Source: Bugula neritina (lineage: Eukaryota; Animalia; Bryozoa). Taken from it: a stretch of DNA of 64,000 bases. Location of the stretch: NCBI GenBank assembly GCA_964035545.1, contig OZ037770.1, forward strand, positions 1,736,001 to 1,800,000, given 5' to 3'. Of the stretch, positions 36,084 to 58,012 are shown one piece after another. Under the pieces are notes generated by a model. The model was not told where the DNA came from. It worked only from the letters and a program-made list of their open reading frames with translations, and searched no databases. Within the stretch, counting starts at the first letter, position 1. Each line of letters begins with the position of its first letter. The position numbers and the translations under genes were made by a program.

Positions 36084-38469
36084 TCATCGACAGGAGCAGT
36101 TAGCGTTGAAGATGGAGCACCAGCACTTCAGCTTATCACAGCATTGGTCATGTGATTGGCAGTATGCTGCAATGAGAGATCAATGTATTTTATACATGAG
36201 TTTATACTGCGTGTTTCAACAGAGCTCAATGGGTTTACACTGTCAACATGTCGCTGAATGGTGTACCTATGCTGAATTATATTGTTTTTAGAGATCATAA
36301 CAAGCTGTACTGTAATTTTTAGTTAATTATTTTACTTAAAAATCACGTAGATGATGTAAATGATGCTATATTTTTTCCTGTGTTTATATCAAATAGCTAC
36401 TAGATATATAATTGGAAACTTCTATTGATCAATTGAAAATTTTAAGGATGTTATGTTTATAAAAAGAAAATTTTATTATGTTTATAAAGAAAGGTGAAAG
36501 TTTTATTCTTGTAAAAAAGAATTTATAGAAAACTATTTGCCAATTTTATCAGTTGTTGGTAATTGTTTTGTTTTAGGTTAATATATATCAATTATCAATA
36601 TAATATAAATGTATAATATACAATTTCACACGAATCATCCCTCCTATGATACGGACACATGCAGGTACAGTATTATATCACCTGGTTTTAGTTTTAAGAG
36701 TTGACTCTATCTACAAGCTTCTACTAATTAGACTACTCTACTTAATATACATCTGATCATGTGACCTCACCTGACAGTTTCCGGCAGGTCTCAGGTACTT
36801 TTCTTGGCAGGTATTTTCTCAGGTATTCCTCCACGGACATCTTTCTCTTCACTCTGTGTTTATGTAAGTAAGAATTATACATATGTCTCCATATTATGTG
36901 CATTGTTTTCATTAGTTATAACTGTTGGAAGTTTACATAAGCTGGGAAAGCTTTTCCTTAATGCATGAAAGCTTTTCACAAGTCATCTCAGCTATGCCAG
37001 CTAAATTATGTTTTTTTTTCCAATTCATTATAGCTACTACACAATAGCTAACCTTTTTATTAGTATAAAAACCGAGCAATTGTCACCTATATCCACACTT
37101 GCATCGTTTCACACTATAATTGTAACTTGCAACTAGAATAACTTATGATAGGCCTATATAATCTTTTTTACATTGCTATTTTCTTCAGTCTGCGACAATA
37201 AATATTTTTATACACTTGACTCAAAAAAATAAAGTTGGAATTTAAAACACCACCCATTTGCTACAATTTTAGTGGATCAAAATTTTCAGTTCAGACAACC
37301 TGACAGCTTTACAGCTGCTTCACAAATCTTATAGGTTAAGGCTGCCAAATGCACAGTGGGCCTATTGTTCAAGACAAAATCAATAAGAGAATACCTAAAT
37401 TAGTAAAATTTTCATTTAAGCTAAATTGCTCTTTTGCAAAAGCAAATTGAACTTAAAATTCAAAACGAAGTTGAAAGAAGTTTTTGGTTTATATCTGAAA
37501 TTATAATAAATGTATATATGCTTTTAAGCCTGTAATATTTAAGAATAAGTCAACAAAAGCATTAAGGTACTATAATTTGTTATGGCATGCAAATAACTGA
37601 TATAAATTTTATTGAATCACAAATTGAGCCTGTTACTACTTACACTGACTGAGTCAAACAATTCTAGAGGACTTGATGAGTTCCTTACCTGAGATGGTTA
37701 GGAGTTTCTTCTTGTTGTATTGTTGTATCATATCCTTTGTTTGACTCTAAAAAAATAAGAAGACCACATGTAAGAGTAAACAATAACATGTTGTAACTAT
37801 AATATCAAAATTCTTTTAGTTTCACTAGTTTCACTATAATTTATGCATAATTATAAAAAAGTCATTTGCGTGTTTTACTGTGAAATATTAACATCAAAAA
37901 AATATTTTGTCTTTTTTCGTAACTCAAGTTTTTCATTTAGAATCTTAAACTTTATTGACTTTTGCGTAAAAGTTTTGATTAAATAATGTTTTGCTAAGAA
38001 AATTTTACAGGTTCAATAATCGTATACATGAAAATATATTATACGCGCCTTTTTCGGAATTTCCTTTGAGTAGGTTTTATCTAAATTATAGCACTAGATC
38101 AGCTACATATTTAATCATATTTAAAGAATAAAATTCTAATTTGCTTATTTATATAACATGACAGCCGCATCAGATGTTTTTTACAGTCACTTACTGCCTA
38201 AACTTTTTAAGAAAGCATACAAATTTCAAAGTTAAATATTTTATATAGGCCTATTAATACTTTAAAAAATCACATTTATGCAAATTGGCACTTCGCGCTG
38301 CTAAAATTTCAATAAACAAAATGTAGGCCTACGCTATATTCAAAGTTGACGCTGTTTTAGGTAGGCTGTCAAATATTTCTTACAATAATTTCTTACCAGA
38401 AAGTTGTTCGTCTGCTGCACATAACACAAACATCAGTACAAAACAAGACAGCATAATGGTGACCTTCAT
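36084..38469 (-). CDS. Secreted 8-Cys inhibitor-cystine-knot (agatoxin/agouti-like) prepropeptide, gene A, 98 aa
   Basis: Exons 38469-38397, 37746-37689, 36853-36771, 36166-36084 (intron phases 1,2,1). Protein: MKVTIMLSCFVLMFVLCAADEQLSESNKGYDTTIQQEETPNHL-RVKR-KMSVEEYLRKYLPRKVPETCRKLSAYCQSHDQCCDKLKCWCSIFNANCSCR*. Signal peptide, RxKR convertase site and C-x6-C-x5-CC-x4-CxC-x6-CxC framework. TATA near 38551-38558; AATAAA on the minus strand at 35895-35900. Confidence 0.88.
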
Positions 38470-38548
38470 GTTGGTGAACTAAAAGTTTTCCTGAAAGTAA
38501 CTTCTCCAATTATTTTGAACTTGTGTCAGTCCAAAACCTTTTACAACT

Positions 38549-54718: not shown

Positions 54719-55040
54719 TTGAAGACTTGGAGAATGGTTAGGAAAATTGACTTGGAATTTGAATGTTATGTCATATCTTCTATATATATATATAAAACTG
54801 TTACCTGTGCTTCTAATTGTTAATAAATTACAATAAAGGAGAAATTTGAAAATATTATATTTTTAAGTTGGTTTTGAATATTGATTCTGCAAAACAAGTG
54901 AATTTATTATATAATTCAAATTTTCAAAAATAGGGTTTTGTTAAATATATTTCACTTTTAATTAACAGCAATTTATAGAAGTGTTGATAAATAATGTATT
55001 CTAACGACACATAAATAGAAGACAGGTTGATTATTATAAC

Positions 55041-58012
55041 TTATAAAGAAGTATCAGCTGCACCATTTCTATAAGCCTCCAATCTCTGTGCATATGTCAC
55101 TCTTCTACAAAAAAGTATATTTATAATCTCCAAAAACTTGACTTAAAGAATATAATTTTAAAACCCAAAAAAGTGTTGAGCAAAAATTTCTTCTATATGC
55201 TCTAAAATATTTTGATACAAGTTGGATTTATGGTTAACATGCAGCTACTTCAAATGACTATTGTAATAAAAAGGAATATTGCTAGTTTAATGACTTAACA
55301 TTTTTCAATTAAATTGGCAATAATAAACATTAGAAAAATACTGAAGCTAAACAAATTGGTTCTACACTGATTATAAAACTGAATATGCTGTACATACTAC
55401 CATACACAAAATAAGTTTTACATCTTCCTAACATTAGCCAAGGACCCTAAAGTAATTTCATACATGCCAAGTTTCTCGAAACAAAAAATTTTTCCTAATC
55501 AAAATTTAGCTTATTTCATCTAAAAAAATTATCCAAGCTCTCTTGCATTCTTCAGAGAACATAATTATGTTAGTAGAAAAAATTGAGAGTATATATATAT
55601 ATATATAAATGTATGTAAGAATATTTGAATTTTAAAAGTACATGAATCAATATTATATTTAAAACATGTTAAGAATGACGTTAATTCTTAGACATACTGC
55701 AGCATAACTACTGCATAATAACTGCTTACCCTGAACCCCATGGGCGAAAGCAAATACCACCAAAGCAGCCGCGTGGGAAACAGCAATTTCTATTGGTGTG
55801 GCATTTTCCTACAACACAACAAAGTTGGTGATACAAGTTTTCAATAAATCAGAATAATGAGACTTTCAGATAAGTTCATTTTTTCATTATTCATCAATTC
55901 TTGTAAGATTTAAAACTTTTTTAGCTTCATGAATTAAGAATGAATCAGTTTATATGGTAATTTTTAGCAAAGTTTTAATTTTAGAAGTACGCCACTGTGC
56001 GCCTTCACCTATATTTGCCAGAAAATTACGTCATTTTTTTACAACAAATAAATTTTAGAAGCACCATTCAATCAGGAAATGGCCGAGAAAGGTGAAAAAG
56101 AGTTGTGACTGCATGCAAACTTACATGCAGTAAAATAACATGTGTGTGTGTGAGTGTTTGTGTGTGAGTGTTTGTGTGTGAGTGTGTGTGTGTGTGTGTG
56201 TGCGTGTGTGTGCGTGCGTACGTGTGTGTATGTGTGAGTGTGTGTATGTGTGTGTGAGTGTATGTGAGTGTGAGTGTGTGTGTGTGTGTGTGTGTGTGTG
56301 TGTGTGTGTGTGCGTGTGTGTGTGCGTGCATGTGTGTGTGAGTGTGTGTGCGTTCGCGTGTGCGTATGCAGTGTGCAGTGTGCAGTGTGTTTGTTCTTGT
56401 GTGTTTAAAGAACAATTTGCTAGAACTCCTCACTTCACATAAAAGCAAGCATATAACTGTAACGTTACGTACTGAACCATCCCTGGCAGTGAGTTCCATA
56501 GTCTTCCAAATTCATTGCTATAATCTCCCTAAAACAGACAGTTATATAATTACTCAATTGCCATGAAAGTCAAAAACTAAATCTATTCTGTAAATTTGTA
56601 TGCAAACTATAGTTTTGATTGCATATGGTGAGTCTATGGCATTCCAGTTATTGCATGTTTATACAGGACACAATAGAAGAATGTGCACTGTATTTGCATA
56701 TAAATTATAAATCATATAAGAATTGTTTTGGCAATATTGCAAAATTGTACTACTTAAAATTTAGTATATTAAAACTGTTTAGAAAATATTTACTTTTGAT
56801 TTAAATTAGGAGAACAAGTTTGATAATTTTACTTAGGCAGCAATTACACCAGCATAAGTTCGCAATCTTCAGTGCCAAAAAACTTCTAAAGAATTATGCT
56901 CCACACTTTATTATTTCAAAAAGTTTACTATGATACATACATATGCTTCCTATATATACTAATTCATTGCTCTTTACTTACAGTCGTTCCCGTGGGACTC
57001 CTCGGGATCTGTAATATTTCAGTCTTTCTACAACACAAATCATTTATGTTTTGAAAGCTGAAATGCTCTTTTATTTTCATCAAATTGACACTTTTAATAA
57101 TGTAACACAAAGAAATCAATAATAACAGCTTGCCTATAACTAAATATAATAGTTTCTATCCATAAAGCAAATTATGGAGAGAACAATAGCTGTTAAGAAG
57201 TTTTTTGCCCACAAAAAGTGAAAAACCATGAATTTATGTGTTTGTTGACAACAGAGTTAATATGTTGTGTATGCACACAACATATAAATCCTATTTGAGC
57301 TACCTGAATAACGAAAGGTGATCTTGTCAAAACCAATTGCTGTATAATACAAGAGATTGACAACGTCAACTACCTTATTTTATTTTTAGGTAGACACAGT
57401 TTTAGGGTGCTAATAAATTATTATAAGCAATCTAATTCTTCAGCAAAATATATTTTATTATTTTAATATTTAGTATATTATTGTAATATGTATTCTGTTT
57501 AGCTCTCAGCTCTTATCTTTTACATAACCATTTAAGGTTTTACTTCATTTTGAAAAAAAAATTATTATATATTAATTCCTTATACAGTTATTTTTTTAAA
57601 AAGTTTCAATAATGTTATGAATAAATTTCTATATTTTTTCAGCTCAAATAAGTTTAATAATAAAATGAGTAAATGCAAGCAAAATTAAAAGTTCAAGTTG
57701 AACTTTAAATAACCCATAAGAGAAAAGGATTTAAAGTAATGTTTGATTAATGGAGATATCTGTCATTTTGAGAGGCGCAATTAACTTATATACAAGACTC
57801 ATTATGTTAAACACAAAAACAGCTATCTCTCCTAAATTTGTGTTAACTATAACTGTAAACATTTATATATTATGCTGTAGACAGTAAAAGTCTTTATTAA
57901 AACTGGTTGTTGATGTTTGCTTACCATGAATCCGCTGTGGGGACAACTTCTGTCTCGCCAGAGTGTAGACTAGGATAGCCAGCAGAAGGAGTATCTGAAA
58001 GACTTTCTTCAT
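55041..58012 (-). CDS. Secreted 6-Cys ICK (C-C-CC-C-C) prepropeptide, gene E, 110 aa
   Basis: Exons 58012-57925, 57027-56982, 56528-56473, 55808-55730, 55104-55041 (phases 1,2,1,2). Protein: MKKVFQILLLLAILVYTLARQKLSPQRIHERLKYYRSRGVPRERLEIIAMNLEDYGTHCQGWFRKCHTNRNCCFPRGCFGGICFRPWGSGRVTYAQRLEAYRNGAADTSL*. TATATAAAA on the minus strand at 58107-58115; AATAAA on the minus strand at 54903-54908. Without the last splice the frame stops right after WGSG. Confidence 0.82.
56141..56365. repeat. Imperfect (TG)n microsatellite in gene E intron 3
   Basis: Direct inspection. Confidence 0.95.

Follow-up and report, generated by a model that had tools for sequence, protein, structure and literature searches.

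CCWamide of spiralians and the arthropod agatoxin-like peptide (ALP, U8-agatoxin) were unified as one family by Thiel et al. 2021 (PMC8557429). As defined there, the precursor consists of a signal peptide, a spacer, a cleavage site and the peptide, in that order; a phase-1 intron follows the signal-peptide exon, a phase-2 intron lies at the basic cleavage site, and the mature peptide, which contains eight cysteines and has an amidated aromatic C-terminus, is encoded in the last exon. Published members have the cysteine spacing C6C(6-13)CC4C1C(5-6)C1C, and an aromatic residue is “often” present between Cys6 and Cys7 (PMC8557429). Nemerteans have non-amidated “CCWamide 3” paralogues, paralogue expansions and one five-exon paralogue, and reports of CCWamide cover phoronids and entoprocts, with none for bryozoans; the receptor of the family is unknown (PMC8557429). 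The sole neuropeptide survey of the bryozoan Bugula neritina reports 11 precursors, with no CCWamide among them and none of the genes described below. Here we describe a tandem array of small secreted-peptide genes in 64,000 nucleotides of bryozoan DNA (GenBank assembly GCA_964035545.1, contig OZ037770.1, positions 1,736,001 to 1,800,000 of the forward strand; hereafter the window), three of which, A–C, probably descend from CCWamide/ALP stock.

The original prediction, made from the sequence alone, had proposed six small multi-exon genes, and all six models were found. A six-frame scan for cysteine patterns detected four minus-strand terminal exons, and the models were then completed by reading the DNA and checked by coordinate. 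They are labeled A (36 kb), B (41–43 kb), C (44–46 kb), D (47–50 kb), E (56–58 kb) and F (plus strand, 53.5–54.7 kb), and together contain exons of 30–136 nt with GT-AG borders in 18 of 18 introns. The first exon of each gene encodes MK followed by 13–19 uncharged residues, a predicted signal peptide. The cluster is a real tandem array of small secreted-peptide genes, which have not previously been named or described in bryozoans.

Genes A, B, C and E, all on the minus strand, share the predicted intron phases 1-2-1. Gene A (36084..38469; exons 38469–38397, 37746–37689, 36853–36771 and 36166–36084) encodes a 98-aa prepropeptide in which an R-VKRK site precedes an eight-cysteine knottin of spacing C6C5CC4C1C6C1C. 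Gene B (40790..43056; exons 43056–42984, 42804–42675, 41375–41335 and 40893–40790) encodes 115 aa, with a pro-peptide ending in G-RRKR followed by an eight-cysteine knottin (C6C5CC4C1C5C1C), and gene C (44194..46031; exons 46031–45959, 45575–45440, 44743–44691 and 44315–44194) encodes 127 aa, with a pro-peptide ending in G-KRKR and a knottin of spacing C6C5CC4C1C6C1C. The product of gene E (55726..58012; exons 58012–57925, 57027–56982, 56528–56473 and 55808–55726) is a 90-aa prepropeptide with a six-cysteine knottin (C6C5CC4C4C) and a C-terminal Gly. The cystine-knot spacing of the original prediction is thus present as C6C5CC4C1C(5/6)C1C in A–C and as C6C5CC4C4C in E. In A–C, the cleavage sites R-VKRK, RRKR and KRKR stand directly before the knot domain, and the precursor order is signal, pro-region, cleavage site and Cys-rich C-terminus. 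Gene A stops at its last Cys plus an Arg; the tails of B and C are acidic or neutral and lack a Gly. The mature peptides range in isoelectric point (pI) from 5.1 to 8.9, and the knotted peptides have calculated masses of ∼4.8–6.1 kDa in the reduced state.

The positions of the introns, as well as their phases, are shared. The third intron, in phase 1, falls at position 5 of the Cys1–Cys2 loop in every family member, E in the same way as A–D; this common position identifies six-cysteine and eight-cysteine members as a single family. In gene A and in two related genes upstream of the window, G and H, the phase-2 intron interrupts a basic codon; in B–D it interrupts the Gly codon just before KRKR/RRKR, and in gene E the codon after RER.

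Conservation of these models was assessed against the B. neritina assembly GCA_010799875.2, which we treat as a second species; the genome that contains the window (216 Mb) would belong to a cheilostome bryozoan close to B. neritina. Among 1.8 billion representative proteins, a profile of three knot exons had exactly three matches, all of them B. neritina “hypothetical proteins,” which are the orthologues of A (EB796_000294, P0002), B (P0001) and C (EB796_005501, P0003); this annotation bears out the earlier suggestion that the locus is undescribed in the lineage. The public B. neritina models come from AUGUSTUS with transcriptome hints and agree with ours in their junctions. The product of gene A is 89% identical to P0002, and the three junctions are the same. 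The other two public models appear imperfect, P0001 starting inside an intron and lacking the signal-peptide exon and P0003 skipping 16 residues of the conserved, open exon 2. Exon-by-exon mapping located orthologous exons for all six genes, and gene order is the same, the orthologue of A being likewise convergent to GART, so that synteny beside GART is kept in the related genome. Lengths and splice sites are retained for A, C and F (for gene C, in all four exons). Between the two genomes exons are 91% and introns 57% identical in gene A, and 85% and 60% in gene C, with gaps counted as differences for introns.

The pattern of substitution is that of constraint. By the Nei–Gojobori method, with synonymous divergence (dS) of about 0.25–0.4, the ratio of nonsynonymous to synonymous divergence (dN/dS) is 0.08 for the mature part of gene A, 0.08 and 0.31 for exons 4 and 2, respectively, of gene B, 0.42 for the mature part of gene C, and 0.11 for exon 4 of gene E (two amino-acid changes versus four synonymous changes, with the stop kept in B. 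neritina). The pooled knot exons have a dN/dS of 0.15 (20.5 synonymous and 16.5 nonsynonymous changes), and selection on them is purifying. The original prediction had described fixed cysteines and highly divergent loops; this holds between paralogues, which are 38–39% identical, but not for orthologues, with dN/dS of 0.08–0.4. Such strong conservation of orthologues is evidence for endogenous ligands and against a toxin shaped by an arms race.

In terms of precursor architecture, A–C share with CCWamide/ALP the eight-cysteine framework, the precursor order, and both intron phases and positions. Gene A retains the hairpin motif C-x-C-x-hydrophobic-aromatic-x-x-N-C-x-C, and in A, G and H the phase-2 intron even falls inside a basic codon. 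An aromatic residue lies between Cys6 and Cys7 in gene A and its orthologue, and not in B or C. The agatoxin-like framework that had been proposed is correct for A–C, and CCWamide/ALP is the published family that fits. No other canonical CCWamide-type exon is present in the genome: a degenerate DNA pattern for the CCWamide hairpin gave no credible exon, and the Toxin_9 profile run across the genome matched EGF-like exons only. It is probable that A–C, and formerly D, descend from CCWamide/ALP stock, with E, G and H a likely six-cysteine offshoot of the A–D stock.

The fate of gene D bears on what the precursors of B–D may yield. Gene D (47214..49940, minus strand; exons 49940–49877, 49050–48921 and 47722–47666, with a decayed exon from 47434) has exons 1–3 open and conserved in both genomes, encoding a signal peptide, a pro-peptide ending in G-KRKR and a short tail. 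Its knot exon has decayed and lies in the wrong frame but can still be recognized. Exon 3 ends in phase 2 rather than phase 1, so that a stop codon arises where it joins the old exon 4 (start 47434); the same junction stop is present in B. neritina, so the knot-less state is older than the divergence of the two species. Different cysteines of the decayed exon have been lost in the two species. The description of this copy as disabled is therefore right for the knot exon, which is dead, and wrong for exons 1–3, which still form an open, conserved frame in both species. The DNA run X1, which shows heterozygous single-nucleotide polymorphisms and repeat pile-ups over 44150–50050, shows no variant allele over the lesions.

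The pro-region that survives in gene D is constrained. Exon 2 of gene D has a dN/dS of 0.15, and the C-terminal 18 residues of the exon 2 product are identical between the species. The pro-regions of B, C and D have the motif NP(N/D)WF in common, and a Gly with a tetrabasic site ends the pro-region in six of six B, C and D orthologue sequences. This arrangement, a Gly before a tetrabasic site, is the classical amidation signal. The conservation of the signal, together with the low dN/dS of gene D exon 2, suggests a product role for the “spacer” itself, as a second, amidated peptide. A constrained, amidation-ready pro-peptide suggests that the precursors of B–D yield two products and that D persists as a knot-less precursor. 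The reading in which B–D are bifunctional precursors of an amidated linear peptide and a knottin and D has become specialized to the linear product is plausible but less likely than not; it is a more modest and more probable version of the ligand/anti-ligand module considered below.

The introns of gene D contain very high-copy repeats (49272–49862 and 48090–48877). The unitig depth of run X1 is ∼3,700–93,000 in the repeat bins of gene D versus ∼60–120 in flanking single-copy sequence. Many contigs skip 219–459 nt inside 49297–49757 of the gene D intron, which suggests an element resembling a miniature inverted-repeat transposable element.

Gene F (53500..54718, plus strand; exons 53500–53572, 53892–53990, 54187–54236 and 54689–54718; phases 1-1-0) encodes 83 aa without cysteine. 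Its product ends in …E-G-KR-(8 aa)-G-stop, which contains two amidation signals, and the predicted products are C-terminally amidated peptides of 28 aa and 8 aa, one of which has an HFRF core. Its last 40 residues are shared without change by B. neritina (0 nonsynonymous versus 8 synonymous changes) and by an in-genome copy, F′ (0 nonsynonymous versus 5 synonymous changes). The two amidation signals and the identity of the peptide region in B. neritina are in agreement with the original prediction that F encodes two amidated peptides. A search with the open frame around F′ exon 2 returned no homologue. In its length of 73 nt and its phase-1 end, the first exon of F matches those of A, B and C exactly (53500–53572 versus 38469–38397, 43056–42984 and 46031–45959), which could reflect a common origin by exon shuffling. 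The best explanation is that F is a neighbor unrelated to the knottin genes.

Taken together, these features give a slight preference to a reading in which small prepropeptide genes have expanded in tandem at this locus in a lineage-specific manner, with A–C as CCWamide/ALP representatives, and in which the products are conserved ligands of neuropeptide or hormone type. Exon 1 would encode the signal peptide, exon 2 the pro-region, and exons 3 and 4 an inhibitor cystine knot (ICK) peptide behind a multibasic furin/prohormone-convertase site. We infer that signal peptidase takes off the leader, that a convertase cut at the multibasic site frees a knotted peptide of ∼43–53 residues, and that in B, C and D the Gly left at the pro-peptide end becomes an amide, which would give a second, linear product; gene D, lacking the knot, would give the linear product only. 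Purifying selection and the amidation signals favor endogenous signaling, and the peptides are most likely conserved extracellular ligands.

Several observations weigh against this assignment. The bryozoan genes have an extra phase-1 intron between Cys1 and Cys2, so that the mature peptide spans two exons; A–C lack the amidated aromatic C-terminus; and their loop 2 is 5 residues long, versus 6–13 in the published examples compared. Sequence searches gave no significant match to CCWamide, ALP or a toxin, and the profile against 1.8 billion proteins led to Bugula only, although the query is very short and has low power. When P0002 and P0003 served as queries in word-based searches, nothing was recovered apart from the two queries and the unspliced read-throughs of exons on metagenome contigs (P0004 and P0005). 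Knottin frameworks are prone to convergence, and many secreted proteins have a phase-1 intron behind the signal peptide. The tetrabasic sites would equally fit furin and the constitutive secretory pathway, and the products could thus be non-neuronal secreted peptides. Finally, the sole public run that contains the stretch is DNA. Given that no sequence match is significant, membership in CCWamide/ALP is likely rather than proven.

The predicted fold agrees with the assignment and also leaves room for a different function. For a model of the mature part of the B. neritina orthologue made with AlphaFold2 (predicted local distance difference test score of 76), nearly all among the best 50 of 63 Foldseek matches are ICK peptides, superimposing with a root-mean-square deviation (rmsd) of 1.1–1.9 Å over ∼30 residues, with E values of at least 0.5 and Z scores of at most 3.9, and the structural neighbors include U4-agatoxin, Tbo-IT2, psalmotoxin and ASIP. 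By language-model features, the score is 0.90 against precursors of spider ICK toxins, a Toxin_9 cluster among them. PDB sequence searches gave nothing significant. The near uniformity of the structural neighbors and the language-model score make a knottin fold of the peptides likely.

Because these neighbors are almost all venom ICK toxins, because tandem duplication, divergent paralogue loops and pseudogenization are typical of defensive and venom families, and because the tetrabasic RxKR sites suit furin and the constitutive secretory pathway, a defensive role has to be considered: the peptides would be antifouling, antimicrobial or toxin-like knottins from epithelial or gland cells of the sessile colony that act on the ion channels or membranes of other organisms rather than on receptors of the bryozoan itself. 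The wide variation in charge of the mature peptides, reflected in the pI range given above, is also consistent with such a role. On the other side, orthologues are under strong purifying selection (dN/dS of 0.08–0.15 at dS of ∼0.3–0.4) and give no indication of diversifying selection, the family is a small one of about nine members in a genome of 216 Mb, and the Gly-tetrabasic signal of the pro-peptides and the amidated neighbor F point to processing of the peptide-hormone type. We know of no venom apparatus in bryozoans. On this evidence a defensive function is unlikely.

A second alternative accepts either function and denies the ancestry: an independent, bryozoan-restricted knottin family could have converged on the agatoxin/CCWamide cysteine pattern. 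The lack of significant similarity outside Bugula speaks for it, as do three departures from the definition of CCWamide/ALP (the extra knot intron, a tail that is not amidated and aromatic, and a shorter loop 2), and the six-cysteine members E, G and H indicate that the scaffold is plastic here. Set against this, the cysteine framework, the order of the precursor parts and the two ancestral introns, in phase as in position, agree with CCWamide/ALP, the hairpin motif of gene A is that of the family, the genome contains no other candidate CCWamide gene, and there are reports of CCWamide from phoronids and entoprocts. Convergence on this scale is, in our judgment, rather improbable. The notion that the models are chance open frames is effectively refuted by conservation across species, with frames, splice sites and stops kept at dS ∼0.3, alongside 18 canonical introns of consistent phase and independent AUGUSTUS models with transcriptome hints.

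With descent from CCWamide/ALP stock and a ligand function as the preferred reading, the extent of the family can be considered. The span 36084–58012 originally given for the cluster is too small, since the family includes two upstream genes, a partial downstream duplicate and one gene on another contig. Genome-wide, the eight-cysteine knot exon and the B/C/D pro-region have matches in this window only. The six-cysteine form extends further. Gene G (C6:1731441-1732965, plus strand) is an intact four-exon gene upstream of the window, with phases 1-2-1 and the spacing C6C5CC4C10C, and ends in …RIIG-stop. Gene H (C6:1722326-1723476, plus strand), likewise upstream and intact with four exons and phases 1-2-1, has the spacing C6C5CC4C8C; it may splice onward, as a GTAAGT lies just past its knot. 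G, H and E have in common an 88-nt first exon, a first loop with G-W-(L/F), and six cysteines. A further six-cysteine secreted knottin gene lies at C7:1018254-1019435 on the minus strand (L004 about 1459–2640), with its signal-peptide exon near L004 2630 and its knot exon at L004 1462–1569. As the genome-wide profile finds only five clear six-cysteine knot exons, the whole family comprises about nine genes, almost all of which cluster in the 130 kb that surround the amidase and GART genes.

The surroundings of these genes contain the remains of gain and loss, as the birth-and-death view of the original prediction had it. Gene F and exons 2–4 of E are duplicated 58.5 kb downstream, at C6:1846911-1853337, with a DNA identity of 82–90%; the E′ exons differ from those of E at 2 of 185 nt, both changes being synonymous. 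No signal-peptide first exon for E′ was found within 17 kb, and the E′ intron is (CA)n-rich and greatly expanded. An orphan copy of the gene D promoter, with its GATTGGCTAA box and exon 1, lies at C6:1822617-1822900 on the minus strand, 95% identical and with no family exons downstream. A knot-like exon of pattern CC-x4-C-x10-C (C6:1734303-1734392, plus strand) has a frame mismatched to its acceptor and is probably a frameshifted relic of the family. The decayed knot of D, this orphan promoter and exon 1, the partial E/F duplicate and the upstream relic all attest to turnover.

The 5′ flanks of B, C and D have sequence in common. The GATTGGCTAA box, an inverted CCAAT, occurs 4 times in the window versus 0.17 expected. 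Three of these boxes, all on the minus strand, lie at 38588..38597, 119–128 nt upstream of the gene A ATG and followed by a TATA-like element, at 46137..46146, 106–115 nt upstream of the gene C ATG, and at 50054..50063, 114–123 nt upstream of the gene D ATG; gene B has a one-off variant at the aligned position. The fourth (19240–19249, minus strand) is ∼3 kb before the first GART match (GARS_C at ∼22.3 kb) and could be an ordinary CCAAT box of another promoter. The shared promoter motif gives weak support to co-regulation of the cluster. Elsewhere in the window, two repeat families at 62117–63346 and 60263–61369 have dozens of genome copies each, with 90–95% identity, and a 225-aa open reading frame (62323–63000) in the former has no Pfam match.

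Few widespread peptide families of protostomes still lack a known receptor and function; CCWamide/ALP is one of them, and bryozoans are a gap in neuropeptide surveys. The conserved paralogues, about nine in number, form a natural variant series, with eight-cysteine, six-cysteine and knot-less members and with and without amidated tails, that could guide receptor deorphanization and structure–activity work. The amidation-ready pro-peptide suggests that what has been a “non-conserved spacer” in the family can become a bioactive product, and gene F adds a new, perfectly conserved pair of predicted amidated peptides. Should the peptides instead prove defensive, they would be, as far as the literature searched shows, the first gene-encoded knottin defense peptides described in the phylum.

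Among other knottin families, the spider Toxin_9 peptides (the μ-agatoxins and Tbo-IT2) have the knottin fold that is predicted here. Toxin_9 (PF02819) is the best Pfam match, with E values of 0.005–0.04 and 14.6–17.5 bits versus a cut-off of 21.3, obtained for gene A (E 0.005) and its orthologue only. The predicted bryozoan fold superimposes on Tbo-IT2 (7AY8) with an rmsd of 1.6 Å over 32 residues and on U4-agatoxin (2N6N) with 1.9 Å over 34. The bryozoan genes differ from the spider family in having four exons, in being under purifying selection and in falling below the Pfam cut-off. In ω-agatoxin IVA, the last hairpin resembles that of gene A.

Agouti and AgRP have a knottin core with CC and CxC…CxC, and the hairpin of gene A is superficially like the active loop of AgRP. 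However, agouti has ten cysteines compared with eight in bryozoan A–C, the RFF triplet is absent from the bryozoan genes, and the Agouti (PF05039) Pfam matches have E values of 0.2–1.9 and 9–12 bits versus a cut-off of 27. To our knowledge, agouti is restricted to vertebrates. A resemblance to the AgRP/melanocortin system is no more than a tentative lead, as the gene A hairpin is equally similar to ω-agatoxin IVA and HFRF is a motif of four residues. By analogy, a ligand/anti-ligand module parallel to vertebrate melanocortin/agouti could be imagined, in which the products of F and the amidated pro-peptides of B–D would be agonists and the knottins antagonists or modulators at the same receptor, the genes being kept together and co-evolving; we consider this very improbable. 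The conotoxins of framework VI/VII (O-superfamily) share with gene E the six-cysteine pattern and the order signal, pro-region and mature peptide. This pattern is generic and is all that they have in common, whereas the intron positions of gene E link it to A–D; conotoxin Pfam matches, from exon peptides and Bugula orthologues, are below threshold. The kinship with agouti/AgRP and with conotoxins that had been suggested thus comes down to a common knottin pattern, all Pfam matches being below cut-off.

The comparison with CCWamide/ALP is of a different kind, as it extends to the framework, the precursor order and the introns. Beyond the knot itself, the bryozoan genes differ from that family in the pro-region of B–D, which is conserved and has its own amidation signal, and in their arrangement in a tandem array with six-cysteine derivatives. 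Judged by sequence and gene structure, the locus would be a derived variant of a known peptide family in a phylum from which it had not been described.

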